Source of the DNA: Oopsacas minuta | Lineage: Eukaryota > Animalia > Porifera | Direction of reading: 5' to 3' | NCBI GenBank assembly: GCA_024704765.1 | Contig: JAKMXF010000233.1 | Location: 612,370-676,369 of the forward strand | DNA length: 64,000 bases | Part shown: in pieces, positions 1 to 32,200 of the stretch | Position numbering within the stretch: position 1 is the first letter of the stretch | How the letters are laid out: each line of letters starts with the position of its first letter | Made by a program: the position numbers and the translations under genes | Notes under the pieces: model-generated | What the model was told of the DNA's origin: nothing | Database searches by the model: none | The model's input: only the letters and a program-made list of their open reading frames with translations

Positions 1-290
1 TAACCCTAGAGGGAGACAAGCTGCACTCCCTCATTACCTGTGGACAAGGAATGGATGTGTTATGCCCTGTCTTCTTCTGTCTAGATCCACTTAACAACTT
101 TGTTATTAGCGATGAAGGCTCTCACTCAATTCGGATATTCTCTCCAGAAGGCAATCTCCTACACACGATAGGAACAGAGGGACACCAACAAGGAATGTTA
201 TATTACCCCCAAGGAATAGCTATAACTCCAAACGGGAGATTAGTTAGTGTGTCAGAGAATGAGAACTACCCTCTACAAATATATTACTAG
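1..290 (+). CDS. NHL-repeat protein copy 1, 3' end only (window starts inside the ORF)
   Basis: Open frame from position 3 to TAG at 288-290 (TLEGDKLHSLITCGQGMDVLCPVFFCLDP...NYPLQIYY); 8 nt differences from 2743-3030 over 288 nt; followed by a (TTTG)n run and AATAAA. Confidence 0.85.
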   Translation, partial: TLEGDKLHSLITCGQGMDVLCPVFFCLDPLNNFVISDEGSHSIRIFSPEGNLLHTIGTEGHQQGMLYYPQGIAITPNGRLVSVSENENYPLQIYY

Positions 291-561
291 ATTGTTTGTT
301 TGTTTGTTTGTTTGTTTGTTTGTTTATTTGTTTATTTGTGAATAAAAATTCCGAATTTCAAATTGCTAAAATATATTTATTCAATCCCCGAATAGGTGGC
401 GGGGGCAACTAACACCTCTAATTGAATACTTGTTTATACATAATAATCTTGCCAAATATACAAACAATAAAATTCAAATATTAGCAATAAATAAATATTC
501 ATATTTGGTGATTTGTTGAGGTGTTAATGTTTAATCGTTTGAATGTTTAACCAATCATTCA

Positions 562-3500
562 TCAGGTCATTACAGATGTAATCGCTGTAATCCATTTCTT
601 TGTTTCATCTAAAAATAGAATTATTATGATAGATATTTGGAAGTGACAAAATAGAATTCTATAATTAACAGTGGAAGCTAATCTGATGTTTTTTGAATAT
701 TCACCAAAAGGTGTGAAAATATGATTAATCATATTATAATTAGTGTATTTTACTGTATCTAAACTAACAAATCTGATAGGTTGACAATTTGTTATATTTC
801 TATTTTCCTGATTGCTTACGAATATTTGTGTGATTAATCATATGTACAGTCATGATGATTGTTATAAATATGTGTATATGTATATTTTGACACCTAATTA
901 TATACCATTAGCACTTGCAGTGAAGAAATATGTCTTAGCTGTTGTAGTGAGTGAAAAGGAGAGCTGACACTCTAAACCATCCTAAAAGATGAGAGAAAAT
1001 ATAAATTAGAAATGGGTCCACAAATCCGTATAGAGTACACGAGTGAGAAGGTGTGAACATCTGTTTATATACTCCCTTATGTAACCAGGAAATTCTGGGT
1101 GTCCTTCATGGCCGCTAAACTGGCATATTTTGCGCCAGCCAAGCTAAATACACCTCTGCTAGGTGACAACCCATACATTCTGTGTGTTTAGTATCTATAA
1201 TGTATACGGAACTAGGATATTGTAGCCACTCAGTATTCAGACTGACACCTCGTGTATGACTATCAGCTGATTCATACATAATATTTATCGCATTTTTAAT
1301 GTATAATTGGTTGCTATGTCTGCATTAGAGTGTATTTACACATATTTGTTGGTATATTCGTTGTCAAGCAAGTAATGACTAAAGTTATTAATATTATTAA
1401 TAAATTATGAAGTTTAGATTCATCGCGAAAAGGCAATCTTATTGGTTCAATACTGGATTCAAAGGTGTGAAGTCTAAATAAATATAATTTCTAAAAGAAC
1501 AACAAACAACAAATATTAAAGAAATAATTAAAATAGGAAATTTGATATTTTGTTATTGCAAATATACAAAATAAGTTTACTGAGAGAGAACTTTCAACCA
1601 CATTCCTTACAGTATCCTAGCAACGAGACACAATAACAAACACCTGCATAACCTCGTGTTTATTCTAACAAGAAATATACTCACATCATCTGATTATTGT
1701 TGTTTGTTTACTTGTTATTCACACATTAATATTACAGCTATAAATACACAAGATTATCCCTAGCAACCAATTCATAACTCAACTATTCTACAATTATCAA
1801 ATGGCAGAACGTTACGCAATCGCCACTCAAGTCGTAGACCCCATAGAGACACACATCAATCACACAATAGATGGTCTCATAGGGTTACTGAATGTCCGTA
1901 GAGTTCAGCTACTGGAGTTAGTCCGCAATACACGGGAGGAGAAGAGAGCAGCAGAGATCGCTCAACGCGAAATGATCGACCAACTGAACGAGGCACAGGC
2001 ACAACTCCAAGGAATATTAAGAGAAAATCCCCTCCAGTCCATGAGGGAGAGAATTGTCCAAGAAATGGAGGACAAAATGCGAGACCTACGAAACAACATT
2101 CCCGTAGAGACACAATTAAAGTGTCATTGCGACATACGTGACCTAGAAATGAGCATTTCCCGTTTAGGAGAGATCGTACAGGTACCAGTAGGAGTGCCAG
2201 ATTATGCTACATTCCAAACGTCCACTGTTGCTACTGGGAAAGAAGGTTCAGGTCCTGGTGAGTTGATTGGTCCAGTAGGTGTAGCTATACATGAAGATAC
2301 ACACCAAATATTCGTGGCTAATTTTGGCAATAACAGAGTAGAGATATTCTCTGACACAGGAGAGTACCTCAATCAGCTGGGTGTAGGACAGCTGTCTTTC
2401 CCATGGGGTATAGCTATACACAGAGAGAATGTGTATGTCAGCTGCTGTGTAGATCACACTGTAACCCAATTCACACTAACTGACATGAGTGTTGTTAGGA
2501 AGATAGGAGGTAGGGGATCAAACAACGGACAATTCAACTTTCCTTGTCAACTAACAACAGATCCCATTGGTCACGTGTTTATAGCAGATAGAGGTAACAG
2601 CAGAATCAACGTACACGACACAGACTTGAACCATCTCCGTAACATTACTCATCAGTCTATGACAAAACCATATGATGTTAAAGTGTCACGTGACCGCGTG
2701 TACGTACTGTGTCCTGATAACAACCCGTGTATGCACGTGCTAACCCTAGAGGGAGACAAGCTGCACTCCCTCATTACCTGTGGACAAGGAATGGATGAGT
2801 TACGCCCTTTCTTCTTCTGTCTAGATCCACTTAACAACTTTGTTATTAGCGATGAAGGCTCTCACTCAATTCGGATATTCTCTCCAGAAGGCAATCTCCT
2901 ACACACGATAGGAACAGAGGGACACCAACAAGGAATGTTATATTACCCCCAAGGAATAGCTATAACTCCAAACGGGAGATTAGTTAGTATATCATGGAAT
3001 GTGAACTACCCTCTACAAATATATTACTAGTTTGTTTGTTTGTGAATAAAAATTCCGAATTTCAAATTCCTAAAATATATTTATTCAATCCCCGAATATG
3101 TATTGCGTGTACATATTAACATATGGCAGGGGGTAATACATAATATCAGCTGATTCATACATAATACTGACCAATAGGAAAGTGTTTATTTCTCTTATTT
3201 TTATTGTAGGTATTGTTAGCCAAGGTTGATCTTCCTACACAAAATAAATAAATAAACAGAAAAATAAACAACTAATTTGTTTATGATAGTTTATTAATAC
3301 CTTTGATTGATATAATTTAAGTGTGAAAAGGTTAAGAACTGCAAACCAAGTAGACAATTCATTTCTACAAAACAACAACAACAATAATAACATTTGTGAA
3401 ATATACAAATACAAACAACTCACGTCTTTGGATTTCTTTTCCATAATTTTCCTTGACAGACAATATTCTAAAGAGTCAATTAACAGGTGTGAATATTACA

Positions 3501-5049
3501 TATACGCTCTGTACTCCTTGGTTGTCCACGGAGGACAGCAAGGAGTACACATTGGTAAAAGTGGACTACTCTAACCTCCAATTCAGGTTTATTTCTTGGC
3601 TTGGGTTTAGGTGGAAGATCAGGGCGGGTAAATCGCATATGTTTTTTGTTAAATGAAGAAACAGCTGTTAATTTGTTAGTATGCATATCTTTTGCTCCAC
3701 CAATAGGATTTGGGGGTTGAATTATGTGTTCTAGTGAATTCCTGTCTGTTTCCATGGTTACTTGGGAAGGATTTATAGTTGTTTTCTTGAAGTTATTTAG
3801 AATTGGTAACTAGGAAAATTGCAAAGAATTTAATTATTTACATACCATACAATTTGCATAGCAACGCATACATACCTTGGGATTTTGTCGCACCGGTAGT
3901 GGAGGTGTCATTGGTTCTTTTTTCGCGACACCAAACAATTTATCTCCTTGACTACGAGTTCTTAAGTTTGGAATGCTGACATTCAATGTTTCTAAAGTGT
4001 AACAAAGATTTTCGTAACATATGACGTCATTGCTCGAGTATTACTTTATAACACTTACTTGTACTAATTTTAGAACTCTTAGGCATCATAATCGGGTTGT
4101 TAGGGTGAAATGCTTGGAATGTTGGTTTAGCAGGGGGTGGAGGAGGGGGCTTATCGGGACGGGGTACCCTGGGTGGTCCCCTAAAGGATTGAGACCTCCC
4201 AGAGTAATTCCTTTGAAAATAAGGTGTTGAGCTGATTATCTCTAACGACGATAAACACTCATTGGAATTGTGAATACTTTCACATGATAATTTCCTCTCA
4301 TCACTATGGTGACCAATTCGGTTGTTAGGAATGTTCAGGCTGTTAGATGGTGAGTGAGGTGGCAGAGGTGGAGCTTGATTGTGTCCTGATAATGGTTTGG
4401 GTCGAATAGGTGGAGGATGGCGTATTGGTGTTTTTCTATTTGGGACTATCACCTTTTCTGGAACTATGTCATACGTATCTGTCCTATTCTTCTGTGGAAT
4501 GTTATCAAAGTTTGAAATCTGTTTGATCTTAAACGGAACTGAAATTGGTTTCAGTTCCGGTTTATGTATAACAGGAACTATATTATTAGAAGAAATATCA
4601 TGTGTAGATTTAGATTTTAAAATTTCCTCTTTTTTCCGCTGAGATTTTGGTACAACCTTAGCGTACAGTCTAGGGTGCATATTATACTCCTCTTGGTCCA
4701 ATTCTTTAGATGAATATGTTCTTATTTTAGAGTAAACAGTTGGTTGTGTTACGGTATGTAATGAAATTCTATAATTAGTATCATTACATTCCATTCTATT
4801 CATTTTAGAGAAATCTAAGTCAGCATAGGTGCTTACCATCCTTGGGTCACGGTCTGTGGTACTATGTCTCCTCATGAATGGGACTTTTATGTCCGCATAA
4901 TTTGCACGAGAGAAATTGTCCTGGTGTATTTTATCTGTGTGGTTTGTTTGACTGAAATCTATGAGTAGATATGTGCCCTCTGTCTCCATATGCTTGACAC
5001 CTCTGATATCAGAGTAAGTTGATTGGTTGAACAAGGAAGAATGGATTTC
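562..5049 (-). CDS. Tyr-motif/Pro-rich adaptor-like protein with C-terminal PH domain (5' end unresolved)
   Basis: Phase-consistent GT-AG exons 5049-4059, 3991-3876, 3809-3576, 3467-3424, 3364-3301, 3234-3172, 981-906, 608-562 splice to ...NIVCQGKLWKRNPKTNELSTWFAVLNLFTLKLYQSKEDQPWLTIPTIKIREINTFLLDGLECQLSFSLTTTAKTYFFTASANDETKKWITAITSVMT*, a typical PH fold pattern ending in the W-containing helix. The ORF-track start at 5034 is a TTG; first in-exon ATG is 4989. Confidence 0.8.
1261..1283 (+). repeat. 23-bp exact direct repeat, partner at 3144-3166, flanking NHL copy 2
   Basis: TATCAGCTGATTCATACATAATA at 1261-1283 and 3144-3166; neighbouring bases differ on both sides. Confidence 0.9.
1520..1800 (+). 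promoter_or_regulatory. Promoter/5' region of the NHL cassette, shared with copy 3 (about 12387-12658, minus strand)
   Basis: About 280 bp of clear homology between the two copies, with TATAAATA at 1739-1746 (12442-12449 in copy 3), ACATTCC at 1600-1606 and CCTAGCAAC words. Confidence 0.65.
1801..3030 (+). CDS. Intronless coiled-coil + NHL-repeat beta-propeller protein (TRIM-NHL-like C-terminal half, no RING/B-box), copy 2, nested antisense in PH-gene intron 982-3171
   Basis: 409-aa ORF; helical N-terminal part followed by repeated P-x-G-[IV]-A-[IV]...[IF]V[AS][DN]...N.R[VI].[IV][FH] NHL blades. Confidence 0.9.
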   Translation: MAERYAIATQVVDPIETHINHTIDGLIGLLNVRRVQLLELVRNTREEKRAAEIAQREMIDQLNEAQAQLQGILRENPLQSMRERIVQEMEDKMRDLRNNIPVETQLKCHCDIRDLEMSISRLGEIVQVPVGVPDYATFQTSTVATGKEGSGPGELIGPVGVAIHEDTHQIFVANFGNNRVEIFSDTGEYLNQLGVGQLSFPWGIAIHRENVYVSCCVDHTVTQFTLTDMSVVRKIGGRGSNNGQFNFPCQLTTDPIGHVFIADRGNSRINVHDTDLNHLRNITHQSMTKPYDVKVSRDRVYVLCPDNNPCMHVLTLEGDKLHSLITCGQGMDELRPFFFCLDPLNNFVISDEGSHSIRIFSPEGNLLHTIGTEGHQQGMLYYPQGIAITPNGRLVSISWNVNYPLQIYY

Positions 5050-6118
5050 CTACAAATATACAAAGTTATAAATAATGTAAACAACAACAAATAACAGAAA
5101 TTTAGTAAGATTGAATATACATTTTTGGTGAAAAGTCTAGTGTCAAATATTTGTAGACAAGATCCGTATAATATGAATATAAAATGTGACACAATGAACC
5201 ACCAAATTATCCAATATTTTTATTACAAACAATCCTCTATAACCATTCCCTGATTATCATATCAAATATCCCCGCGCGTTTTTACAGAAATCTCCCGCTC
5301 GTTTTTATAGAAATTACGTAGATTCACCAATGAAATTCAACCGCCAATTATCAGAAAACACCCGCCAAATACTCATAAAATAATTACAAGTACATAATTG
5401 GCGCGATTTTCTAAATGGCGCTTAAATATGTATGCCTATAACTTACTGAGCTGTTCATTGGCGCCAAATTAATTTGTGCATATCCGTTCTCCATCAAAAG
5501 ACTTTATATAGTCTTTCTTTGTGACTAATTAGATTAGCGATTGGCACTTATTAGCTTCTCCAAGCTGAGAACCTAGAAGCCAATTGGTCAATCAAATCCT
5601 TTGTTCTATAATGCAACGAATTCTAGGAGAATCAAAGTCCGAGTGGCACCAATGTGTCACAAATTAAGGCTTTTCAACATTTACGATAATTAGAACATAC
5701 TGTTTATTAGATTGATAGTAATATGAGTGTATTTTCAACCTTTTAAGAGAAGATTTTTTCACAGGACACATTCTAACACCTTTTCATACGTCATGATTAT
5801 ATTCATAATTGTCCCATTGTACAATGAACCCAGTTCTTATAGAACCAATTACCCCCTTTATATTACTGCCGATTTCACACCTTTTTAGAATATATTATTA
5901 TAACTCGTATTTTCATATTATTTATATGTGCATATTATTTAAAATTTCCTAATAACATAAGCTAGTGTAATATGGAACTATAATTAGAATTGTGTCATAA
6001 CTGACATGGACATGGTTTCAGCCATAAACAGAACTGTCAAAAAATGGCCACTATCCCCCTTTTATTGTTTAGTTATATTCGTAATTAGTGTACATTCCAC
6101 ATTCCATATTCCGTTGTC

Positions 6119-8345
6119 ATGACAGACCTAGGAGAGAATCTAGCAATGAGACCAACTCCCTCTCCAATTTCTTCTGAGAAGATATTTATTAGATTACACA
6201 AACAGGAATATGCAGCTGGTGATGTCATATATGGGTAAGGTATATTCACACAAATATTTGTTTGTTTACTCGGTTTTATTTCGTAAACAAAAATTGATAA
6301 ATATAAACAAATATTCACTGATTTACACATTCCTTTCTAGACTTGTGTATCTATGGGTGAGTGCGCCAGTTGCGTCACAACTTCTAAAAATATCTATTCA
6401 AGGATTCGAGGAATGTGAGTTACCATGGCAACCATCCCTCTACGGAATTCTCACCATAGTTACGTATAGGTACATTTGAAATGTGGGAGAGTGAACCGAA
6501 TCCTGATGACGTCAAGAACCCTATTAAGCGTAGAGTAGAGAGACACAATAAACGAGACACTATTCCCAAATTTGAGGAACAGCTGGCTTCCTATCCACGT
6601 GAGTTATATTTATAATGACAACAGATTGTTGTTGTTATTCTTTGTTGTTGTTTATAGGTGGATTTCCTTTGGGTTATTTTTATTATCCGTTCAAATATGA
6701 GTTGCCTCAGGTGATGCCAGGTTGTTTGTTTGTTTGTTTGTTTGTTTGTTTATTTGTTTGTTTGTTTGTTTGTTTGTTTGTTTACATGTTTATTTGTTAG
6801 GCAGCTTCTTCTGTAAACTAGGAGAGTCTGGCGGTCTCAAATGGAATGGAATGGTTAGATACATAATAAGAGCTTTTATCGACATTCCAGGAGCACACCA
6901 TGATCTCTGGGTAACATATATATCTTTATAAATATCAACAGACTTGTTTACGTGTTTATTACTTATAAACTATTGAATTGGTGCCTGTGAGCATGCTTAG
7001 ATATACACCATGTGTAGGTGTTACTAATTTAATTGATCTGGAAGTATGACTGTTGCTATTATAGGTAGAAGAAGAACTGTTAATCAGAGAGGCTAAGCCT
7101 AGTATCAGTGCTCTGTCTAAATCAGTAATGAATACACAGGTACAATCTTGCTTCTGTATACCCAGGGGAATGATTGAGGTGTCTGCATGGTGAGTATCTA
7201 GTTCTTGTTGTTATTTATTTGTTTGTTCGTTATTTGTGGGTGTTTGTAAGAGCTATAGCAGCTGTTCCCCCTTGTACCTGTTGTAACACCATTCTGTGGA
7301 CCCCTCTGTCCTCCATGTACCACCAAGAGGTCCATAGGGTCAGGTTATTGTTGTTGTTATTATTAGGCTAGATAAGAATGTATACAGACCAGAAGAGAAG
7401 CTAACAGTACACTACACTATTCGTAACACCTCAGCTGTTGATGTACAGTATCTGCTAATTAAGGTTAGTATCATATTTTCACAAGCTTGTGTATATGTAC
7501 ATGTTTCTGGGCATACCTTTATAGACATATTTTCACACCTTTTAGCTAGTGCGTGTGATTAAACTGAGTGGTAATGAACCAAATAGACACAAACCCTTCA
7601 TTCAATCTATGTCCTCATCTTCTAAGGGATTGCTACACGGTATTAATTATGACGTCACGACGTTACCACATACAAAGGATACCTCTACAAATATGCAAGT
7701 GTTATTTACACTATCACAAAACGGATGTAGACATAACCAGAGTGTTAATAGGTAACTAAGGAGTGATTAAGGACAGTAACTCCCCGTTATAACAAAGTGA
7801 CCCTCTGTAGCAGAGGTTCCCATTCTCTCTACCCAGATACCTCAGGGTATACGTGGTTTACTGTATGGTATTTAAGAGGTGTCCTTCGCAACCGAGCGGT
7901 GACTTAAGAATGTTAAATATCCAAATATAATTACTAAACTTGTTTCTGTTTTAGAGATGCTAATACTACTCTAACACCTGATTCTGGCGGTCAAACTATA
8001 TACCCTACAACACATGCTTATAATATAAAGGTAGTTAGCACTTCACACCTTTATTCATGTTATTATTTGTGTTTATTAGTGTACATATGTGCTAGACATA
8101 GAAGTAAGAGCTAAATGGTCTGCGAGTATAATACTTACATTACCAATACTGGTTATGCATTCACTGGATCAACAGGTTAGCTGTTTGTTTGTTTGTTTGT
8201 TTGTTGTTTGTTTACTTGTTTGTTGTTATTATTATTTACTTACCAGTGGATGGATTGGAATGCTCCTATCTGGAGTAAGAAGTGTTCTATAGTACAGGTA
8301 CCAGGAGAATATGGAGTTACTAATTCAGAAAGTATGTTACTATAA
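6119..8345 (+). CDS. Arrestin-domain (alpha-arrestin-like) protein, multi-exon
   Basis: Spliced motifs IRLHKQEYAAGDVIYGLVYLWV, YPFKYELPQVMPGSF, GMVRYIIRAFIDIP, IEVSAWLDKNVYRPEEKLTVHTTIRNTS match arrestin-N and arrestin-C domain patterns; ATG 6119, TAA 8343-8345. Confidence 0.75.
6722..6781 (+). repeat. (TTTG)n intronic microsatellite
   Basis: About 15 TTTG/TTTA units in an arrestin-gene intron; similar runs occur throughout the window. Confidence 0.95.
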
Positions 8346-8366
8346 TAAGATTTATAGTTCCATATG

Positions 8367-8434
8367 CAGTAGACTCCGCTTAATCGGGTCAAAATGGTTT
8401 GGTACCGATGTGACACTATTAAGCTGAGTCTCTG
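8367..8434. mobile_element. Short MITE-like hairpin, family A
   Basis: Imperfect terminal inverted repeats CAGTAGACTCCGCTTAAT ... ATTAAGCTGAGTCTCTG; related copies at 46956-47026 and 62949-63005. Confidence 0.55.
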
Positions 8435-9288
8435 GATAGTTCCAGTTACAATTATTCTAATAAACAACAACAAATTTAATGAATTAAGCCAGCTGTTCCC
8501 AACCTGCGTTGAATTAAGCGATATAATTCAAATTGGAACCAAGTTTCCGGATAGTTTCAATTTCAGTTGCTAATTAAGTTATTTATTCTATTTTAGTAAC
8601 AGAACATTTCTCAGGGAACCCAGGTGTTAAAATATGAATAATTCTTGTAAATTTGTTTATTTGTATTTTTAAGATGTTTGATATTTTATTATTTGTTGTT
8701 TCTAATAAATCTAATTAGCAATTTGTTTGTATTTACTACACATACACAGATTATTCACGCTATTTCATAATTATTTTTATTTATTTTGATTATTTGTCCT
8801 CCTATCTGTATGTATATTAGTTACTTAACCATGGATGGCGAATTTGTATATTATAATATAAGAAATTCACCATCCATGGTTTTAGAACTAATAAGCATAC
8901 TGGCTGTCATTATCTTTAGGTTTTCCTCTCTTTTGAGTTCTTCTCGACACAATATGTCACTATATCTAAGTAATATATATATATTATTGGCTGACTTATT
9001 ATCCATGGTCCAGTAGACTAAACAGTGTAATCTCCTTAAGCAGAGTACTAAGGACATCGAATAATGCTAATCTGTTTGTGGAGATTAATTTGTATGGGGC
9101 TAGTATATTTTCAATCCATTTCCACAGACCTCTTTTGTGGAGGTTCACTGTATCCAATTGTCTCTATAATATCCCTAGTCTACCCCTTAAGGGTTGTACT
9201 GTGGGTACCTGTCTTCGTATCCATGGCCCAATATAATCCCATCAAGTTGTCATATAATTGAACTAACTCCTTGTTGTTAATTAGCTGT

Positions 9289-12200
9289 ATGGATTTTGGT
9301 TCCCAACACGTATATGATTACGCCTGTAGTGATGATGAGGTGATAGCTGAGGATGACTTTTCTAACCCTCTATACGCCAGGTTAGTATATTCACATCTTT
9401 ATTTGTGCCCCTTATAATTGTGTCGGTTGTGTAGTGATGATGAGGACGATTATGATCTACCTGCTCCACCACCACCACCACCACCTGTCAGTTTGGCAGA
9501 AACTGATTATTTAGCTAATATTGCTGGTGAGTTATTTGTATATTTGTTTGTTTGTTTATTTATTTATTTATTTATTTGTTTATTTGTTTACTAACAGCTC
9601 CACCAACCGGTCGTTCAGTATCACCACCAGCAGAGAGACGCAGAAGCTCTAGGAGCTCTCGATTTGCTGCCCTTAACCAAGCTACGGATTCTGGTAACCT
9701 AGCAGAATTACAAACACCCCAAACACAACCTGCCTTAATAATTCCTTCATTTATCCCTCAACGCAGGAAGAAACATGTTACATGGGATATAGGTAAGATC
9801 ATTAATATTCACACCCAATAGGTGACTACAACGGATCATACACGACAATTTCGAACGTCCGTTGGTGAGACTACACCTTGTATTCTATTTTTAGAAGAAA
9901 GAGCCTTATCAGCTGTTCCTCCCTCCACCAGTAAAATTCACAAAATCCGTAAAGCAGATACAAATGTATTATCTATCAATTTTCGTACTCTTAAGGAACC
10001 TAGTGACGTATTCACAGGAGAGGCGGAGTTGTGTACAAATTGTAGATCTGTATTTTCACACCTTTCTGTTCTAACTTGTTCTGGAGAGGATAGTGACAAG
10101 GTTTGTTTGTTTGTTTGTTAATTAGTAGAGCTCATACACGGATTGTCCATGGTATTCGACGCGGTCTCTTGAGACTATCTAGTGAATACATTTTTGGGTG
10201 TTGTGTGTTCGTTTCAACGGTTAATCCGGTGTATTCTATTCTGAATATTTAATCATATTTTGACAAGTTTCTGTATATTTCTTATTATTGATTATTCATA
10301 TTGTTGTTGTTTACAGATATGGAGGTGTGAATATTGTGGACATGAAAATATAGTTGATTTAATGCCAGAAGAAATACCGAAAGATAATGACGTCACGTAT
10401 ATGTTATTACCACCTACTACAAGTGATAATACTAAAACATCTGGTAACCAATCTCTGTTGATATTCTGTATTGATATATCTGGAAGTATGGCTGCTACTA
10501 CTGAGGTAAACAAGTACACAAACAAACAAATAAACATACACAAACAAACAAACATATACAAGTAATCAAACAAATGAACAAACAGATAAGTAAACAGGTA
10601 AACAAACAAACAAACAAACATATTCGTTATAAGCAAGTAATTCTTTACGATCTATAGCAACATTTCCCAACCTTATTCACCCGTATACTACATATACCAA
10701 TATTAACACCTTATAGACCGTAATATATCTTATTGACATCCTGCTGTTTACCACCATGGACAGCAGAACGCTGCCCTAAAGCTTGATATCGGGAGAGGTG
10801 CCCCTAGCACTTATTTACAATTCCATTTACAGATACCCGGTAGTTACCAATTGAAGGAGGACCCATCCTTAGAGGAACTATTAAAGGAAATAGGTCTAAC
10901 AAGACAGGAATATCAAGTACAAGTTACGCATATGAGGCCGGCTGTTACTTATCTGTCTAGACTTAAGAGTTTACAATCAGCTGTTCAGTCACAACTTGAT
11001 CAGCTGACTACTACTGATCCTGATAAGAGAGTTGCTATTATCACATTCAATAATGAGGTTATTTTTAGTAACATTATTCTATAAGGATTATTTGTATTTT
11101 AATTTATTACAATACAAACAAATAAACACAAATAAACAAACAAACAAACAAACAAACTAGTAATATATTTGTAGAGGGTAGTTCTCATTCCTTGACACAC
11201 AAACTAATCTCCCGTTTGGAGTTATAGCTATTCCTTGGGGGTAATATAACATTCCTTGTTGGTGTCCCTCTGTTCCTATCGTGTGTAGGAGATTGCCTTC
11301 TGGAGAGAATATCCGAATTGAGTGAGAGCCTTCATCGCTAATAACAAAGTTGTTAAGTGGATCTAGACAGAAGAAGACAGGGCATAACACATCCATTCCT
11401 TGTCCACAGGTAATGAGGGAGTGCAGCTTGTCTCCCTCTAGGGTTAGCACGTGCATACACGGGTTGTTATCAGGATACAGTACGTACACACGGTCACGTG
11501 ACACTTTAACATCAGATGGTTTTGTCATAGACTGATGAGTAATGTTACGGAGATGGTTCAGGTCTGTGTCGTGTACGCTGATTCTGTTGTTACCGCCATC
11601 TGCTATAAACACGTGACCGATGGGATCTGTTGTTAGTTGTCTATGATTATTGAATTGTCCGTTGTTTGATCCCCTACCGCCTATCTTCCTAACAAGACTC
11701 ATGTCAGTTAGTGTGAATTGGCTTACAGTGCTACCTCCCAAGTAGCTGACATACACATTCTCTCCGTGTACAGCTATACCCCATGGGAAACACAGCTGTC
11801 CTACACCCAGCTGATTGAGGTACTCTCCTGTGTCAGAGAATATCTCTACTCTGTGATTGCCAAGATTAGCCACGAATATTTGGTGTGTATCTTCATGTAT
11901 AGCTATACCTGATGGACAAATCAACTCGCCAGGATCTGAACCTGTCTTTCCAGTAGCAACAGTGAACGTTTGGAATGTAGCATAATCTGGTACTCCTACT
12001 GGTACCTGTACGATCTCTCCTAAACGGGAAATGCTCATTTCTAGGTCACTTGTCTCACACTGCCACTGTAATCGGGTCTCTACGGGAATGTTGTTTCGTA
12101 GGTCTCGCATTTTGTCCTCCATTTCTTGGACAATTCTCTCCCTCATGGACTGGAGGGGATATTCTCTTAATGTTCCTTGGAGTTGTGCTTGTGCCTCGTT

Positions 12201-15200
12201 CAGTTGGTCGATCATTTGTTGTCGTGCGATCTTTGCGGCTCTCTTTTCCTCCCGTGTATTGCGGACTTGCTCCAATAGCTGAACTCTACGGACATTCAGT
12301 AGCTCTATGAGACCATCTATTGTGTAGTTGATGTGTATCTCTATGGGGTCTACGACTTGAGGTACGATTGCGTAACCTTCTGCCATTTTGATAATTGTAG
12401 AATAGTTGAGTTATGAATTGGTTGCTAGGGATAATCTTGTGTATTTATAGCTGTAATATTAATGTTTAATAACAAGTAAACAAACAACAATAATCAGATG
12501 ATGTGAGTATATTTCTTGTTAGAATAAACACGAGGTTATGCAAGTGTTTGTTATTGTGTCTCGTTGCTAGGATACTGTAAGGAATGTGATTGTAAGTTCT
12601 CTTAGTAAACTTATTTTGTATATTTTGCTTTAAGAATTTTCCTATTTTAATTATTTCCCAAATTAGAATTACTTTAATTCTATTTTTAGTAACTAATGCT
12701 TTACATAGCATAGTTGTTCAGTTCTTAAATGGTGACTTTGTATGTGTATATGTTTCGCTCTGCTTTTCACACCTTTAGAGATTAAGACAACAAATTTGGC
12801 ATGTGTACTCGTAGTGACATCTAGTTATGCACCTGACATTTGAATTATTTCAAATGTGTATATATTTCACACCTTTTGACACTTCTGTATATAGCCCTAT
12901 CAGATTGTAGTGTTTACAATTAGACATCAATGCGTAATATAGTTCTGGTGTAGTGTTTGTAATCTAATTAGCTCTGTAATATATTTGTATTGAGGTAGAC
13001 TGTAATTCAAGGCATTTTATTAAAGATGTATACACCTATTTTATCAATTGATTAATCATATTTTCACACCTTTATATCAATATTTTAAATTGTCCTAGTG
13101 ATCCGCTTCCGCCTGCTAATTAGGGGTCGATATAACAAAAGTTTCTTTTGTTATAATGGATATTTAGTAGAATAATATAGTATCTGCACTGGCTGTGATT
13201 TTAGATTTCTGTTGTTGTTTATCTTTCTGTAATCGTGGTGCTTAAGTTCCAGTTCACTTTATTGAATATTTGATTAGGTTAATACGTCACTGAATGAGGG
13301 CTAATTCCTCTACATTCCATACTTTAGGTATCGTTGCTAGGAGACGGTACAAAAGAAGCGCTAATTCTAGCGGGAGATAAGTTATATGAAGAAGAAAGAT
13401 TGTTTGATTGTGGTGCTAATTTCCCTCTTCCTGACGTCATACGGAACACTAGCCAGAAAATAAGCCAAACTCTATGGAGGTAGATATACACACCTAATCC
13501 TCAAGGGGTAACTTAGGTGTTAGATTATGGGATGGAATGTTAGAATGGTTTGGATAGCTGTGATCAGGTTTCACTTTATTTTTGGAGAAAATTTTAAACA
13601 CGAGTGTTAATTTCAATTTGTATATAAAATATTTTTCACAGCTAACTTGGGTAAAATTGATGATACGTATTGGCTAGATCATAGGTGTGAAAATGTGTAT
13701 TTTTATAGTTTGAGGGACAATGGACAGACAGCATTAGGACCTGCCTTAGTGTGTGCTATCGCTATGGCATCAAGAGGTCCACCTGGATCAAGAGTTATTA
13801 TTTGTACAGACGGATTAGCAAATATTGGTAAGTAACAAGGTGTTTATGAGTATTTAGGTGTCTTACACAAATATGACACTTATGTAGGTGTTGGACAGCT
13901 AGAGGACATATCAACACCTGATAAACTGATGGAGGCTCAGACCTATTACGAGCATATATCTAAGGTTGCTAATGAAAAGGGTGTTACTGTAAGTGTGCTA
14001 ACTATTTCTGGAGCAGAGTGTCGTATACTAGAGCTTGGACAGGTGGCAGACAAGACCAATGGAGAGGTAAGGGAGGGAGGATACGATGTCATACAAGTCT
14101 ATGAAATACGAATAGAACTTTTGAATTCACACCTTATACTGATTAAGGGGCAGAACCTCTTGTACTTACAGTATCATATTTAGGTAGAGAGGGTGAATCC
14201 TGTAAACTTGATGGATGGATTCAGTAGCATTCTTGCTAAACCTATCCTAGCAACCAATGTTTCTATTAGACTAACTCTACATTCCAAGCTGTACTTAAGG
14301 TAACTAGGAACTATACGAATGAGATTTAGAGCTATCAAATCTGATTGGTTGAGACATTTGACTTAAATATTCCACATATTTGTTATCATATGTTGTTGCT
14401 AGGGAACCAGGACAATCTGACAACTCTTGTGTAGAAAGGAATGTTGGGAATGTTACAGAGGATTCGGAACTAACATTTGAATATGGAATTAGGAAAAAAC
14501 AGAAATTAGAAACTGAACCACTAATTGTATTAGAACCGGAACCAACTATTAAACCAGAAGCAGAACTATTGGTAGTACCTGAACCAACCAATGTTGAATC
14601 GGAACCGACGAAAGAAACTGATCCTAAACCCAAGGAATTGGGTGCTACAGGTAAAATTGACGCCAGGGGGCAAATAATAACACCCTCCCCCGAGAGTAAC
14701 AACTTACATATGACTGCTGTAACATATACATTCCATCATGTAGCCGGCGTAACCAAGAAGAGCTCATCACTAGTGATAGAGGGTAAGGAACATCTACCAT
14801 TTCAACTACAGATATCATATACAGCTAAGGATGGATCTAAGTGTATGAGAGTTATGACACAAGCAATGCCTGTTACTAAAAATAGGGAAGAAGCTGAAAA
14901 GAGTAAGTGTTTGTTTGTTTGTATGTATGATTATTGTTCAGCTGCACAATTTCGTTACAGTAACAGTTGTTTGCATGTTTGTCCACCCTAGCTTCAAACC
15001 TTGATGTATTACAAACACACGTAATAAGATCAACAGCTGATATGGCTCTGAAAGGAGACTTCTCAAATCCCCGCTTAAAATGTTTATCTAATCAGAAGAT
15101 GGTATACAGAATAGGAAATAACTATAACAGGAAGAAGGAGTATAGAGCATGGTCTAGTAATGTAGCTCAAACTGAAAACTCATTGTTCTCTGCTCAAAAG

Positions 15201-16033
15201 GTACATTCCATTCTTGTTGCTAGGTAACCTTAGGCAGACATGCTGTCAATACATTTGCATTTGCTCTAACAAAGATTATACAAATACCCGCTTATGTAGA
15301 AGTGTTAAATCATACAAATATGGTGTTAAAGTAACAGCTGTTAACTGTATTTAAATACTTTTCATGGGATCAAATACATATATTGTTTATAGCAAGAAGA
15401 AGCCACGTTTGGAAGGAGACTTAGCGATTCTGGAGGTGACAGTGATGATGAGTTGGACATGTTCTCTGTGGATAGATCCTCTAAAAAGGTAGATTACATT
15501 CAGAGTGAACCATGGATACACGGGGCACGATTCGGCTAATAACCAATCGCTATAGCTAATCCCAATTTTTTGATTTTTGGTTCTCATAATGTGTGATTGG
15601 TCATGTGTTACCAATAGTGATCGTGTACATGAATATGCGTATATATGTAAATTCTATTTTTAGCTATCAAAGATCTCCAAGAAAGCTAAGAAAGCTCAGG
15701 TTAGAGCTTCTTCTACAATGACTGATACTTTTTCAGAGAATTTATATAAAGTACGTTGCTATTATTAATATTTTCACACCTTTTGATATGCTAACTGGTG
15801 CAAAACTTCAAAAATTCTTACACAATAATAAGTTACACAAGTATAAAAGTAAAATTTATTGTATAAATGCATTTTATTCAACCAAATACGTTGCTATGGA
15901 ATAACCTTGTCAGTACATGTACAAGACACAAAAATTAATTCTGAATTCTTGGCGCCTCAGCCCGCGTGAAATATTCTATAAATAGTATCATGATTTGTTC
16001 TATTTTTAGGCTAAGAAGAAGTCCTGTAAATAA
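9289..16033 (+). CDS. Sec23/Sec24-type zinc finger + VWA protein (resembles animal 'circularly permutated Ras protein 1-like' proteins, no Ras domain seen), multi-exon
   Basis: MDFGSQHVY start; CTNCRSVFSHLS and WRCEYCGHEN zinc ligands; MIDAS FCIDISGSM; VAIITFNNE|VSLLGDG across intron 11058-13327; TALGPAL and VIICTDGLANIG; ends ...ENLYK|AKKKSCK*. Confidence 0.8.
11157..12386 (-). CDS. Intronless coiled-coil + NHL protein, copy 3, nested antisense in VWA-gene intron 11058-13327
   Basis: 409-aa ORF collinear with copy 2; (TTTG)n run right after the stop; TATTTTTAGTAAC direct repeat at 11060-11072 and 12681-12693. Confidence 0.9.
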   Translation of the reverse strand: MAEGYAIVPQVVDPIEIHINYTIDGLIELLNVRRVQLLEQVRNTREEKRAAKIARQQMIDQLNEAQAQLQGTLREYPLQSMRERIVQEMEDKMRDLRNNIPVETRLQWQCETSDLEMSISRLGEIVQVPVGVPDYATFQTFTVATGKTGSDPGELICPSGIAIHEDTHQIFVANLGNHRVEIFSDTGEYLNQLGVGQLCFPWGIAVHGENVYVSYLGGSTVSQFTLTDMSLVRKIGGRGSNNGQFNNHRQLTTDPIGHVFIADGGNNRISVHDTDLNHLRNITHQSMTKPSDVKVSRDRVYVLYPDNNPCMHVLTLEGDKLHSLITCGQGMDVLCPVFFCLDPLNNFVISDEGSHSIRIFSPEGNLLHTIGTEGHQQGMLYYPQGIAITPNGRLVCVSRNENYPLQIYY

Positions 16034-24789: not shown

Positions 24790-25090
24790 CTCTAATTACT
24801 CTTACTGTATTATAGGAACCATGGATAAATGAGATACTTATGAATGCAATATCCGAGTAACCAGTTTCTTAGAGACAGCTCTGCTAGGATACTAGATGTC
24901 TCAATGGAATGTGACCCGAAGGAATTCTAGTTATAATCCATAGTTCCATATTTTAGCGCCAATAATTATAATGACCCACTTATTCTATTTATAGAATAAA
25001 TATATAACTGAATACACACATTTCATATAATATAAACTCTAATAAATACATTCCATTATAGTTGCTAGGTTACCACGCTACACACTCTGA

Positions 25091-26070: not shown

Positions 26071-26327
26071 TTTATATTACTTAATGTAAATAATAATAAC
26101 AATAATAATGAGCTAATAAAGTTGTTAAAATAAGATAAAGAAAATAATAATAATCACATGAATAACTGAATTCCATAGCATGAATTCAGTTGCTATGAAC
26201 GTCAATTACAAAAGGACAATTTGCCTCCTTGGCCTACTGAATCTTGTGACCGCCCCTGGGTGTGAAATACCGACTCATATGGCGCCTAAAGAAGTATAAA
26301 CAATGAGTTAAGTGTTTGTTACTAAAT

Positions 26328-28999
26328 TTAGAATTTAGGAATTCCTCTACCAACAAAATACACTACACAACCTCCTAACAGACTAGCACTCATAGTTACC
26401 AATCCTACTCTAAGGAATGTGCCTAGAAATGTTCCAGAAGATTGTGTCTGTTTCTTGACAACCAGACCAGTGTGCTAAAAATAATAATATATAATATGTG
26501 TGTATAGATAAATATGTGATTATTATAACACCTCTGATATATGAGATTCTATAGCTGTTAAAGTGTGTGTCAGCTGATTGGCTGATTCCACAGCTGTTCC
26601 CACTCCTTCACATACCAATCTAGTTTCATCACATTCCTAAGTTTATATACATATATGAATATTCACACCTCTCAGAGGATTCAACTAACTAAATTTGGTT
26701 CTAATGTGCCTGGGGAATCCTCCAGCTGTTTGTGAATGTATCTCAGCTGTGCTTTGATGTATGCACAGTGCTTAGAGAAGTTCTGTAATACTCCAGCTAG
26801 TTCCAGAGACCTAGGGTATAGTTCCGGGTAATAGGGTCAATTCAGGACCAGGCCCTGTACCCTATTGTCCAATAGGACACATTCCAAAGGCTACTGTTAG
26901 TTGTGAACTTGTTTCATTTCCACTGTTAGCCTAAGTTTACCTGTCACATGAATAACTTCACAATATTTAGTAACTAACAGGTGAATAGTAGTGATTTATA
27001 TTAACACCTGCTTTAAACGCATAAGTAACATATTTACATGTTTAGATGTAAATAATGTAGAGCTGATACAATCAACAGGGTGCTAGCGGTCTATACGATG
27101 GTCTCATTAATTAGTACTCACGTAATAGTCCTATTATTCTGAGTGGGTATAGGGGAACAATGCCATTCTCTAGCATGTACCTCTGTTATAGCTAAGAGTA
27201 TCTTCTTTCTGTTAGATAGATCTTTGATACCTATTCTGTCTAAGTCCTCCTCTCTCATGCTGATTAGTTCTGAGAACTCTATACCCTGCGACTAATGATA
27301 ACAATAAACAAACAAACTAACAAACAAACAAACAAACAACAAACCTGGAAAATATCAATCAAATCAGGTAATTCCAATCCTATTAGGAATAATTCTATAT
27401 CTCCATACCTCACATAGCTATAAATAGTATCATAAATAAACAAATATACTAGTAAATAACAACACTAACAAACTTGTTTACTACTCTTGTAGAGAGTGTA
27501 ACGTCTTGTGACTTGATACTAAAGGTGTTAATATATGATTAATCGTATAATCGTTTGATAATCAAACAACTAACTGGGTAGTAATCTGATCAGCTGTTTG
27601 AGGGGTGTTACATACTTCTAGCTCGATTTCCGGTCCATCTGGCGCCTGATTCTTATCAAGATGTGTTCGTATAATTCTTGACACCTCGTAGTGTCCTGCA
27701 TTATCTGCTATATCAGCTGCTAGCTCACCCTCTCTGGTCTCTAGTGATACATCGATGCCACATTCTAGTAACACCTCTGTTAATGATATATTACCCGTGT
27801 GTGCTGCGAAACACAGAGCCTATAAATAATGAATGTTTATTCTAGTGGACCCATGTACCCATTGAATCATGTATGAAAATGTTAGGAACCAAATTAACAA
27901 TTAATCCCAACTAATAAATTTCATTTTACCTCTATAGTTACTAGGGAGATTAATGGAAGTAACACAGGAGATACTCTTATATGTTAATATTAGATATGTA
28001 ATCATGGATACTAAATAGCGTTAATACAGTCTAGGAAATATCTATCATTTGTATACTATTAGAAAAGTAACAAATGTGTCAAGCTAGAAGACACACAACA
28101 TACCGACCATCCTCTCATCTCCTGTTTATTGATATTAGCACCACTACGTGTTAGAAGTGGCAGGAGCAACAAGTGGCAGTGTTTAGTTGCATACAGAAAT
28201 GGTGTCATCTTACACCTGTCCTGAGCATTCACGTTAGCATGTGCCTCTAGCAACAATTTTGCTGTTGCGTGTGCAGTCTCTTCTGGCTGTCTCGAGGCAC
28301 AACATACCATCAGAGCAGTAAACATATCTGTAAATAACAATAACAATAATATAAACTTAAAGGAAGTCTGTGAGGATAAATTCACTCATAAATAATTACC
28401 ACATTGGGAGTTTGGGTTAGCTGAGTATCTCAGGAGTAATTCTACTACAGCTGGTCTCCCTGATTCAGCTCCAAACATCAGAGCTGTCCAATTAGATTTG
28501 AGTTGAGCATTTGGATCAATTCCTAATAACAAAAATGTGAGATAATGAATCATATGATTAATCATATGAGATAATATTACCTCCGTCTAATAGCTGTTTA
28601 ACATCACCTAAGTCGCCACGACACACTGCATCCCTGAATGCCTCTAGCGTTGCTAGGTCGTGACTAGGTCTGCCACCTTGTCCCCTCCCTCTCCCCCTTC
28701 CCCGCCCCCTGCGAGCTCGCCTAAATATATTTGGCGCGTGATGTATATGATAATTCTATTTATAGTAACAATTATTACCCGCGTGTAGGAAAACTGTTAG
28801 AAGTGATGACGTCATTTCTATTGGTTGTTTGTAAGTGTGAATTGTTGTTGTTTTTATTTTGATAAGAATACCCAGAATTCTGACTTGTATTATTAGTGAA
28901 AGGAGTAACAGGTTTGGACTCAATACTAGGAGGATCCTCCCCGAGGTCAAATTCCTCTGAGTCAGAACTGTTGTCAATGTCGAATGCAAACGATGACAT
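26328..28999 (-). CDS. ASZ1: Ankyrin-repeat + SAM + C-terminal transmembrane protein, ASZ1/GASZ-like
   Basis: Acidic SSDSEE N-terminus, ankyrin repeats (NWTALMFGA, KMTPFLYA, GWSALCFAA), SAM-like YGDIELFLIGLELPDLIDIFQ...MREEDLDRIGIKDLSNRKKIL, and a hydrophobic tail anchor FLRVGLVTMSASLLGGCVVYFVGRGIPKF*; same architecture as ASZ1. Confidence 0.75.
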
Positions 29000-29233
29000 A
29001 ACTAATTAACTAATTGGAAGTATTAATTATTGAATAGTGGTAACAACTGGAACTATATAGTCAATAACAGAAAAGTGCAACAAATACATAGTTACTAACT
29101 TGGTTAATAGGAATGCCAATAAACAAACAATAATATTCAATTCACTCAAAATATTTACATAAATAATCTTGTCTAAATACACAATCATATAAAAATTTCT
29201 AAAAATAGAATAATTAAGACAATAGCAACGAGG

Positions 29234-32200
29234 TTATTTATTGGAATGTCTGGAAAGGAGTTCGCATATTTCCTCAAACTTAGCGACTTGTTGATCGAAC
29301 CTTCCATCATCAAGCATCTCTTCAACAAGCTAAATAAATAAACAAGTAAACAAACAAATAAACAAACAAACAAATAAACAATACCTTATCCTTGCAAGAG
29401 TGCGCATAACTGTACAAAGACTGTAGAGCACTTTCTCTGTAGAAATGATCTCCTCCCTAAATACCTCAAATATTATACCGTTGTCATGGTAACAAAAGCA
29501 ATGCATTACTTACTCTAGGAACTCTGTAGTTATCAAACAGCTGTTCTTCACTCACAGCTGGACTCTGTGACATAGTGTCGTAGTAGCTATAAATAGAACA
29601 AATTAATATGCGCATAAACTATAAAGTAAACAAATCGATTGGTTGAATAATACTCACTTCAGAATCCGTTCTCTATAAATAGGAACTTCCTTGTTGTATA
29701 AAATTTTTGTTGTTTGTGCATCCTACAAATACAAATAGAAATGTAACATAAATAAACAAACAATATGTAACAGGATGTTAATGATATAAAAGGTGTGATA
29801 ATATGAAATATGCTAAAAGGAGAATAGACAAAAGAGAAATAAATTTTTACTCTTCAGTCAATGAGAGAACCATCTGATGTTAAAGTGTCACGTGACCGTG
29901 TGTACGTACTGTGTCCATCTAACAACCCGTGTATGCACGTGCTAACCCTAGAGGGAGACAAGATACACTCCCTCATTACCAAAGGACAAGGAATGGATGT
30001 GTTATACCCTTCCTTCTTCTGTCTAGATCCACTTAATAACTTTGTTATTAGCGATCAAGATTCTCACTCAATTCGGGTATCCTCTCCAGAAGGCAATCTC
30101 CTACACACGATAGGAACATATGGACACCAACAAGGAATGTTATATGAGCCCCAAGGAATAGCTATAACTCCAAACGGGAGATTAGTTAGTGGATCAAGGA
30201 ATGAGAACTACCCTCTACAAATATATTACTAGTTTGTTTGTTTGTTTATAAATTAATGAATTGAATATATCAGTAAATATTTTAGCTAAGGCACTGATAA
30301 ACACATCTGCCATTTACAAAAGGTGTGAAAATGTCTTCAATAATTGATATAACATACCTCAGTGATTTGTGAGTCGGTTGCTAGGCAACTGTCAATGAAT
30401 ACCTAAGGAATGTAAGAATAAGATACCTTAGTTACCATATTGTCAGTTAAGAATGTACTAACCTGTGAAATTACTGTCAGGTTTGAATCCAATGTTTCAG
30501 ACTTAATAACATCAAATAAATGGTCAGGATTTCTTATTATATTAGCCCAGAATCTTAGAGGGACACTAAACGACACATTAACCACTTAACACCTATTTAT
30601 ATGTATTTACGACGACGTAACTTGTAAATAAATATAACCCAGCTGTCCACACCCATCCCTAAACTTTATGAGTACAGTTTAAATCAGAAGATTTGCCTTC
30701 GAAAAGAGTAAATAAATTCATGGCAGAAGGGTGTCTGGATACCCAGTAACCCACGGTAGCACCCGCCCTGTAAATTATCCATGGTTCTACCTATTATTCT
30801 TCCATAGACGTATAACATCCTCCTTTTTGTCGATATCATACTCATCAGCTAGATGTTCAAGCAAATCAAACAGGAATTTGATTGGTGGAGCTAGTTTATG
30901 AGGTTCTAGTGTTACATCTGGGAAGATAGCACATACCATGTCATCTACGTATTTTTGTAGAATATTCTAGAACAAAAATAGCTTCAAGTTAATCTTCATA
31001 CAATTACTGTATTTCCTATCTATACAGGTGTCAATGTGTTACAAAATGTGTCACAGAACACAATAAACCACATCTCACCTTAGTTGATATAAGACGGATT
31101 AGATAAATCTCTGTAGCTAGCTTCTTGGATTTAGCTGTTTGGGTCTCTTCTGGCTTAGTCTATAAATAGAATATCAATCAATCCTAGCAACGTACTATGT
31201 CATTGGAATGTGTATAGTATTAGTTTATTAATCAGCTGACCAGATGCCAGATCTTGTCCTCCTCGTGTAGATGAGCATCCCTAAATCCTCTCAGAGAGTT
31301 GCTCTGTATAAGAGTACCCAGATAATCATAGACCTGTCCTCCTAGGGGCTTCTGGGTCCTTGGTACTAGTTTAAACACTTGGTTAATAGCTGAGTAGTGG
31401 GAGAGGGTGTTAACTCTCTTCCAGTCCCCCTGTACAACAGAGGTACGATCATTGTCCCTTAAGATAAGACCTGCTCCTTGTTTACGAGTAGAGTGTACTT
31501 CTAAGTCAAGTTCCTATATTAATAGGATAATATTAATTAATATTTGTTTGTTTGTTTGTGTGTTTGTCTGATAGTATACTTGTTTACATATCATTGTTTA
31601 CCAGCTGTATACATGTATATTAGTTTGTTATTATTTACTTACAGTAACATGAGGTCTCTGTGAGACAGGCTGTCCGCTGTATACAGCATCCATAATCTTT
31701 AACTTTGCTTGTGATATAGTGTCACACTCCAGTACCTTAACTCTTAATTCTGTTTGATTATCTGTTATTACTCCTACTTCTAATTCCTTAACAACAAGTA
31801 AACAAATGTTGTTGTTGTATTACGGAACACACATTAAAAATTTTGATAAGATTCCATTCTGATAGGTCTAATTTAACCGCAGAAAAGGTGTGAAAATGCT
31901 CACAATAATTTCATATCACAGGTGCATATCTACCCCCAAAGTGTTATTGTTATTTACTTACCCTCATCTCTTCTATATCAGTGATTTGAGTTAGAATCTT
32001 CTCTTTAGCAAGAGAGTGTTTAGCTTCACCGGTGAATACATCAATTGGTCCTTTCTCTGTCTGTCTCTTAGTAGCTCTGTAAGCTACGTGGATAGCAGGT
32101 CCTGCCCTCTCTATAAGGTAACCATACATCATCATTGCTAGCCAATCAGATAACAGCTTTTCTGCTACACTCTCTGTCCTATAATACAGATAACTCAAAA

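Follow-up and report, generated by a model that had tools for sequence, protein, structure and literature searches.

How does a gene without introns come to lie inside an intron of an unrelated gene? This question is raised by a stretch of 64,000 nucleotides from the glass sponge Oopsacas minuta (contig JAKMXF010000233.1, positions 612,370 to 676,369 of the forward strand; hereafter the window), in which closely related intronless genes for NHL-repeat proteins are found in the introns of three different host genes. As a general answer we consider it moderately probable that a rapidly growing gene family disperses through short-range duplication of DNA in a genome densely packed with genes, and that selection keeps those intronic landings which are antisense to the host. 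The account is based primarily on the origin of one copy, which can be read to the base, and on empty orthologous sites in related sponges.

Self-comparison of the window by BLASTN and TBLASTN with the second copy as query revealed four related NHL sequences (two full, one 5′-truncated and one cut by the window edge), in agreement with an earlier note on this DNA. Copy 1 (1–397, forward strand) is the one at the edge; its last 96 codons and the stop occupy 1–290, its start is located 939 bp before the window, and the complete open reading frame (ORF) of 409 amino acids (aa) spans 7261–8490 of the extended locus L001, whose coordinates equal those of the window plus 8200. Positioned between convergent Ski/Sno-like and PH genes, it is followed on the same strand by a stretch (291–445) consisting of a (TTTG)n tail (292–339) and ca. 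100 bp of 3′ flank, the latter common only to copy 2. Copy 2 contains an intronless ORF of 409 aa (1801–3030, forward strand), identified by Pfam as NHL repeats, and a short (TTTG)n tail (3031–3044, forward strand) which marks the 3′ limit of its homology with all dispersed copies. Copy 3 (11109–12657, reverse strand) is composed of tail (11109–11156), ORF (11157–12386) and leader (12387–12657), and is 93.3% identical in DNA to copy 2 across 1521–3043 according to BLASTN. Copy 4 (29847–30252, forward strand) is a gene fragment without leader and ATG, in which the last 129 codons are in frame through the stop to 30232, followed by a (GTTT)n tail; its stop is found at the same place as in the other copies. 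All four copies end in TAG(TTTG)n.

Copies 2, 3 and 4 are each antisense to a host gene whose exons continue on both sides, and their nesting inside host introns is confirmed as far as comparison of sequences allows. The 2,190-bp intron of the PH gene (982–3171, reverse strand) holds copy 2 and is bordered by a donor G/GTCAGT at 3171 and an acceptor TTTTAG/G at 982 (the slash marks the splice joint), both in phase 0. The last two host exons (981–906 and 608–562, together 562–981, reverse strand) are conserved in a related sponge (L011 12110–12187 and 12195–12350), where the exons flanking copy 2 are only 74 bp apart. Since these short exons gave no Pfam match, the host is referred to as PH-type on the basis of the earlier reading and of motif inspection. 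Copy 3 resides in a 2,270-bp intron (11058–13327, forward strand) of a Sec23/VWA-like gene, between upstream exons coding for a zinc ribbon and the start of the trunk domain (9289–11057, forward strand) and downstream exons at 13328–16033 (forward strand). A library-wide HMMER search with the downstream exon retrieved full-length relatives of 786–895 aa which are colinear across copy 3 and residue-contiguous from 10944–11060 to 13328–13477, residue 463 meeting residue 463 at the joint 11060/13328. Host continuity also fits the Pfam match to Sec23_trunk positions 21–58 in the exon just before the intron. Copy 4 is located in a 635-bp intron of plexin-1 (29723–30357, reverse strand); in the neighbouring paralogue plexin-2, the counterparts of the two flanking exons are consecutive segments ca. 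108 bp apart, and the splice sites fit. The intron boundaries and the antisense orientation of the three nested copies proposed in the earlier note are thereby corroborated by homologues, by the exons of the relative, by plexin-2 and by splice sites. The sequencing runs covering 1–6000 behaved as genomic DNA, with colinear contigs; neither splice joints nor the empty-site joint 1283>3167 were found in these contigs over this range.

The same arrangement was encountered at further loci, comprising five of O. minuta and one of another sponge assembly. One NHL copy separates the Tudor/MBD/Pre-SET part of SETDB1 from its SET part (locus L002), one splits the USP32 catalytic domain in two (L004b), one lies between the cadherin/LamG and EGF parts of a large cadherin and one, in the other sponge species, between Myosin_N and Myosin_head exons. 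In all four the NHL strand is opposite to that of the host, so that, together with the window, seven of seven clear nested copies are antisense; this count leaves out copy 1, L007 and L003 (intergenic or unclear) as well as L004a and L008b.

The age of the nestings can be judged from related glass sponges, in which orthologous loci were reached via exon-sized ORFs of the assemblies ENA ERZ25072730 and ERZ25069837. Synteny is kept, with Ski, PH, arrestin, VWA-like, VWC and Ras genes at one locus and EDRF1, YEATS and SETDB1 at another. Compared to O. minuta, the introns of the relatives are short: 74 bp versus 2,190 bp for the PH intron (copy 2), 91 bp versus 2,270 bp for the VWA-like intron (copy 3), ca. 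90 bp versus ca. 1,800 bp for the SETDB1 intron and ca. 350 bp versus ca. 2,240 bp for the USP32 intron. Copy 1 is absent from the Ski-PH spacer of the relative, and TBLASTN detected no NHL sequence anywhere in the five related loci. The short NHL-free introns therefore indicate that the five copies at these four loci were inserted in the lineage of O. minuta and do not represent ancient nestings. The empty sites, which the earlier note had suggested looking for in relatives, are thus present at four loci, and the outcome named there as contrary, an ancient nesting, was not encountered. A view according to which NHL genes have resided in introns since before the glass-sponge split, their similarity being due to gene conversion, could refer to the abundance of nested genes in glass sponges and the conservation of many of them (PMC10282587), and to signs of conversion in copy 3, whose upstream module is that of the copies in L003 and L006 while its ORF is closest to copies 1 and 2. 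However, it is contradicted for five copies by the orthologous introns in two assemblies, and we judge it highly improbable. Two other features of the related loci are recorded here. The USP32 intron of the relative (L012 10320–10440) contains an inverted repeat of ca. 22 bp, GGCGACTCCGCTTAATTGGGACA / TGTCCGATTAAGCGGAGTCTAC, with a spacing of ca. 60 bp, which resembles a small miniature inverted-repeat transposable element (MITE). The spacer between the SETDB1 SET-domain halves of the relative (L013 10465–12864) is a single ORF of 799 aa with faint beta-propeller matches, and its O. minuta counterpart (L002 9759–8602 and beyond) aligns at ca. 68% DNA identity.

Among the insertions, that of copy 2 is the one resolved to the base. 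An exact 23-bp direct repeat, TATCAGCTGATTCATACATAATA, is found at 1261–1283 and at 3144–3166 (both forward strand), the right copy directly within the PH intron beside its donor (3171), and represents the target-site duplication. The enclosed 1.86-kb segment (1284–3143, forward strand) stems from the copy 1 locus (93% identity on the BLAST alignment of 1274–3101); in it, leader, ORF and tail are preceded by 237 bp of donor flank and followed by ca. 100 bp of 3′ flank. Copies 1 and 2 have in common 1,866 bp (93%), corresponding to 1274–3101 and, with indels, reaching 3145; the sharing extends 247 bp upstream of the leader common to the family and ca. 100 bp downstream of the tail, with identities of 96% in the far flank, 99% in the leader and 95% in the ORF. 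When the insertion is subtracted, a PH intron of ca. 307 bp is left. The leftmost ca. 110 bp of the shared segment have their homologue in the 3′ flank of the relative's Ski-like gene, which makes them ancestral at the copy 1 locus. Copy 1 served as donor and copy 2 is the copy, and the moving unit was a piece of chromosome, neither a defined element nor an mRNA. As the copied stretch includes the ancestral Ski flank, its ends were evidently set by the break and not by the cassette. A simple tandem duplication of 2,740 bp is ruled out, because the intervening 837 bp with the PH exons 981–906 and 608–562 are not duplicated; the earlier note had already argued from these exons, now found to be conserved in the relative, that copies 1 and 2 are not a simple tandem pair.

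The junctions of this event carry a further signature. The decamer ATACATAATA, which occurs five times in the window versus 1.07 times expected, is present at both ends of the donor segment of copy 1, whose 3′ flank terminates in it at 436–445, and the target also ended in ATACATAATA. One reading of the junctions is microhomology-mediated joining at a staggered break (10 bp left, 2 bp right), another is a pair of replication template switches. The extended copy 1/2 segment shows about twofold depth, which suggests two genomic copies, summed contig depth being a rough guide; leader and ORF fragments at ≥90% identity are many-fold more abundant by the same measure. No matches of the ATACATAATA-bounded segment other than copies 1 and 2 were found. 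DNA-level segmental duplication is established for the copy 1 to copy 2 event, and for that event only.

The dispersed copies have a smaller unit in common, consisting of a TATA-containing leader of ca. 250–290 bp, the ORF of 1,230 bp and TAG(TTTG)n. Copies on six contigs match copy 2 from 1521–1556 to ca. 3043 with 83–93% identity, and in the other sponge species the homology runs from −213 to the stop at 75%. The leader (1521–1800, forward strand) is a putative compact promoter with the TATA box TATAAATA at 1739–1746 and with blocks kept across paralogues and species. An alignment of ten leaders from two species places TATAAATA at a fixed distance from the ATG and reveals three near-invariant blocks, namely CACATTCCTTACAG.ATCCTAGCAACGAGACA, ATATACTCACATCATC and ATCCCTAGCAACCAATTC. 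Copies 2 and 3 have ca. 280 bp upstream of the ATG in common, including TATAAATA, and in all full copies the homology continues ca. 190–230 bp upstream of the box. Hence the cassette described earlier holds as a discrete self-contained unit with a leader conserved in another species, and so does the sharing of upstream sequence between copies 2 and 3, while the function of the latter as promoter is presumptive. Regarding other properties of the leader, its most conserved block (1588–1613, the same block in all leaders) begins with the splice-acceptor-like TTCCTTACAG, and each leader contains two instances of CCTAGCAAC, which resembles an RFX/X-box half-site. For Aphrocallistes vastus, trans-splicing of a spliced leader has been reported (PMC10282587), and the NHL leader might hold a trans-splice acceptor at TTCCTTACAG.

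The two ends of the shared sequence behave differently. The 5′ limit varies by sub-lineage (−250/−290, ca. −500, at least −616, and inside the ORF in copy 4). Copy 3 and the copies in L003 and L006 have a further 250–350 bp upstream in common, an extra module (12753–13098, reverse strand, in copy 3) restricted to these three, and copies 1 and 2 the different 247 bp mentioned above. The 3′ limit is always the microsatellite, save between copies 1 and 2, and among the O. minuta copies examined only the oldest, that of L002, lacks the (TTTG)n tail. The earlier note likened the cassette to a non-autonomous mobile element served by an enzyme acting in trans; in full, this view calls for a DNA element having ends of its own, which a transposase or recombinase from another part of the genome would cut or copy and integrate. 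Such an element would be compatible with a discrete unit on six contigs, with its high copy number (the summed contig depth over the ORF is 20–190 times the single-copy level, a rough guide only), with recent and repeated insertion, with the occurrence of ATACATAATA at either end of the donor segment as well as at the target of copy 2, and with the 15% of the genome made up of DNA transposons (PMC10280926). But the ends of the unit differ between sub-lineages and carry no terminal inverted repeats, and its target duplications are not recurrent; the longest words shared by the flanks of the 1.5-kb unit measure 7–13 bp, which is below the cross-copy null of up to 18 bp. The inverted repeats and the constant-length duplication that define terminal-inverted-repeat DNA transposons and MITEs are thus lacking, and no transposase was found. 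The ATACATAATA-bounded segment, moreover, exists in two copies only, and its left end is ancestral flank instead of element sequence. Helitrons are recognized by a 5′ TC, a 3′ CTRR end with a preceding hairpin and insertion between A and T. By inspection, the 5′ ends of the unit and of the segment (GGAAATT... and TTTATCGC..., respectively) do not start with TC, and the CTAG at the stop codon precedes the shared microsatellite and not the flank, no hairpin search by a folding tool having been included. Mobilisation in trans of an element with ends of its own appears, in sum, unlikely: inverted repeats, recurrent target duplications and poly(A) are absent and the 5′ ends vary. What stands of the proposed mobile-element-like spread are lineage-specific, promoter-carrying, antisense insertions, whereas transposon-type mobility is contradicted for the copy 1 to copy 2 event. 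The motif AAAGGTGTGAA was also considered as cassette terminus or recombination site and rejected. It flanks many copies in the same orientation, but it occurs genome-wide without conserved flanks and antisense to host genes everywhere, so it is not part of the cassette.

The fixed 3′ limit could also suggest retroposition, in which a trans-acting enzyme of the long interspersed nuclear element (LINE) type would reverse-transcribe NHL transcripts at nicks, with priming on the (UUUG)n tail. Besides TAG(TTTG)n as the constant 3′ limit of every dispersed copy and the variable 5′ limits, the truncation of copy 4 at its 5′ end with intact 3′ end and tail, the intronless state of all copies and the one 23-bp target duplication are in line with this scenario, which we nevertheless regard as improbable. 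The homology of the full copies extends ca. 190–230 bp beyond a TATA box whose position is conserved across paralogues and species, and this argues against an mRNA copy, which would lack upstream sequence. Where a processed retrogene should begin at the transcription start and lose the parental promoter, 250–290 bp upstream of the ATG are shared by all full copies. Copies 1 and 2 even have ancestral intergenic donor DNA in common, and the segment enclosed by the 23-mer duplication at copy 2 is larger and extends past the tail. The tail itself is (TTTG)n, poly(A) is absent from the NHL unit, and none of the target duplications of the 1.5-kb unit exceeds the null. The absence of introns, correctly described earlier for the copies in the window along with their stop-(TTTG)n ends, is uninformative because introns are missing from the family in all species seen. 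No microsatellite is commoner than (TTTG)n in the window and in this genome, and the assignment of (TTTG)n as a cassette terminator is not upheld. Finally, interspersed repeats account for 34.10% of the O. minuta genome, with 18.01% unclassified and 15.44% DNA transposons (PMC10280926), which therefore leaves at most ca. 0.65% for retroelements. The claim of copying at the DNA level is strengthened by both the homology upstream of the TATA box and the ancestral Ski flank co-copied with copy 2. An integration anchored by pairing of the tail with intronic (AAAC)n was examined as well and is unsupported as a general rule, with one empty site for, one weak and two against: the relative has (AAAC)14 at the position of copy 1 and a short AAATAAATAAACTAG at that of copy 3, no repeat at the USP32 site, and at the SETDB1 site a repeat of opposite polarity ca. 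290 bp away.

We thus favour a copy-and-paste process based on DNA duplication, in which a stretch of 0.4–2 kb would be duplicated at an existing locus and the duplicate inserted into a chromosome break at another site, often nearby, the ends of the stretch being set by the event and not by the cassette. Each copy would be a compact transcription unit with upstream sequence including the TATA box, the ORF and a very short 3′ end starting with (TTTG)n. Because the genome is very gene-dense, many of the harmless landing places would be introns; and because a unit inserted in sense orientation would shorten the host transcript by its own termination signals, mainly antisense intronic insertions would survive. 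Purifying selection on promoter and ORF, together with gene conversion between neighbours, may then create the appearance of a cassette with fixed ends. The hierarchical sharing of flanks with variable 5′ ends counts for DNA-level copying. Copies 1, 2 and 3 are mutually closest relatives within a span of 12 kb and in differing orientations, which suggests that duplication is often short-range, and the mosaic of copy 3 described above shows signs of some gene conversion.

Several points weigh against this account. All dispersed copies have a fixed 3′ limit (stop plus microsatellite) and a variable 5′ limit, and one copy is 5′-truncated. Such an asymmetry is expected from 3′-primed copying, by reverse transcription or templated repair, and not from random breakpoints, and it constitutes the main unexplained point, unless a hypermutable microsatellite erases the downstream homology and thereby mimics a fixed 3′ end. 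The three copies of ATACATAATA are not fully explained and may indicate guidance by microhomology or by a site. Only one event is resolved in its mechanism, and DNA-level copying of the copies other than copy 2 is assumed by extension. Selection is the presumed cause of the antisense bias by analogy with other systems, and splicing of the hosts across the insertions as well as the transcription start and poly(A) site of the NHL genes are predicted from sequence. Due to the unexplained asymmetry, a directed copying mechanism is kept alive, namely a transposase-free “selfish gene cassette” in which copying starts at the 3′ microsatellite or at guides such as ATACATAATA. Running promoter-wards via templated break repair or template switching, it would leave 3′ ends fixed and 5′ ends variable, truncate some copies and now and then produce long target duplications; we consider this possibility doubtful.

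The family is a large one, in glass sponges still growing, and consists of single-exon genes with a coiled coil and an NHL propeller, of which 985 relatives were found. In a tree of 117 members, the 17 full-length O. minuta proteins form one clade (Shimodaira-Hasegawa-like approximate likelihood ratio test support 97) apart from ca. 100 proteins of other assemblies, which fits an expansion within each lineage. Pairwise comparison of copies 1, 2 and 3 shows two to three times as many non-synonymous as synonymous codon differences (36:17 for copy 1 versus copy 2; 53:18 and 36:14 for the other pairs). The codon differences cluster recurrently, e.g. at residues 55–57, 107–114, 156–161, 215–222, 247–249, 264–270, 333–337 and 396–401. 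The NHL repeat model PF01436 is matched by copy 2 (E = 5.8e-18) and copy 3 (E = 1.8e-20), both above the curated cut-off, and is the sole family matched; the Pfam scan of both full proteins detected neither RING nor B-box. Like the TRIM-NHL proteins TRIM71/LIN-41, TRIM2/3 and Brat, they carry C-terminal NHL repeats after an N-terminus of ca. 130 residues, with a coiled coil according to the earlier reading. In contrast to TRIM-NHL proteins, they have only 409 aa and belong to a multi-copy, fast-evolving family. Because Pfam finds NHL repeats and nothing else, the “TRIM71-like” names, which some O. minuta copies bear in public annotation only, overstate the resemblance to TRIM71.

Two further motifs of the region are mentioned for completeness. 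The 10-mer AAGGTGTGAA occurs 22 times in the window versus 0.16 times expected (e.g. 708–717, 7532–7541, 13063–13072, 30320–30329 and 44218–44227), with a wider consensus of about AAAAGGTGTGAAAATAT that is similar to a T-box site. Its 16 hits inside genes of known strand all run antisense to their gene, one copy (706–739) has a contig depth of more than 100 times the single-copy level, and the motif is much rarer in the loci of the related sponges. Since its flanks are not conserved, AAGGTGTGAA is a short motif rather than a transposon. The plexin-1 exon beside the intron of copy 4 contains, just inside its border (30371–30390), a perfect X-box-like palindrome, GTTGCTAGGCAAC.

In the NCBI gene models each host is split in two at the NHL copy. 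The last two PH-type exons appear as a separate gene of 82 aa, and the upstream and downstream parts of the Sec23/VWA-like host as separate genes of 341 and 463 aa. Split public models extend over L002 1–16643, L004 1–8801, L006 8301–18344 and 562–5458 and 9289–16033 of the window; the genes affected are SETDB1, USP32, the large cadherin, the PH gene and the Sec23/VWA-like gene, one of them being fused to a downstream HECT ligase gene. The O. minuta annotation was produced with BRAKER1/Augustus (PMC10280926), and the Augustus version used does not predict nested genes by default; 83 nested genes are annotated in O. minuta versus 2,432 in the manually curated A. vastus (PMC10282587).

Glass-sponge genomes are reportedly rich in nested single-exon genes, and their single-exon families expand by an unknown mechanism (PMC10282587). 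The present genes resemble the nested ones described by Francis et al. 2023 (PMC10282587) in that an intronless gene is located wholly within an intron of an unrelated host which annotation splits. They differ in that one family supplies many of them, the insertions are recent and lineage-specific instead of conserved, and one origin is resolved to the base. Another parallel is offered by birth-and-death families expanding by DNA-based segmental duplication, e.g. the single-exon AIG1 genes of A. vastus, for which the mechanism was called uncertain (PMC10282587). Species-specific clades, near-identical single-exon genes interleaved with unrelated genes and the joint copying of promoter and ORF are common features. 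Unlike in AIG1-type families, the NHL pieces are tiny (0.4–2 kb) and land in introns of neighbours instead of tandem arrays, and one event displays a 23-bp target duplication and junctional microhomology. With processed retrogenes and LINE-mobilised sequences the copies share the intronless, dispersed state, a fixed 3′ simple-repeat tail, one 5′-truncated member and the antisense intronic bias; they are distinguished by pre-TATA sequence, the lack of poly(A), co-copied intergenic donor DNA and a retroelement-poor genome. As in gene capture by Pack-MULEs or Helitrons, a host gene is multiplied and scattered as DNA with its regulatory sequence, but terminal inverted repeats, Helitron termini, a constant target duplication and surrounding element sequence are lacking. 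NHL genes are without mention in either genome paper (PMC10280926, PMC10282587). The locus is thus a well-resolved case of the origin of nested single-exon genes and not a new kind of mobile element.

For the biology of glass sponges, the locus cleanly documents the emergence of nested genes and long introns in an animal with a compact genome, with five insertions contrasted to empty sites and, for one of them, with donor, target, junctions and target duplication all visible. The O. minuta gene models are systematically broken at NHL-bearing introns, which distorts gene counts and domain inventories of an early-branching animal. Should the selfish cassette prove true, it would represent a novel route by which genes of the cell proliferate in the manner of mobile elements and lengthen introns. 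With regard to the question posed in the A. vastus paper, how single-exon families expand, the findings offer a partial answer, namely copying at the DNA level for at least one event.

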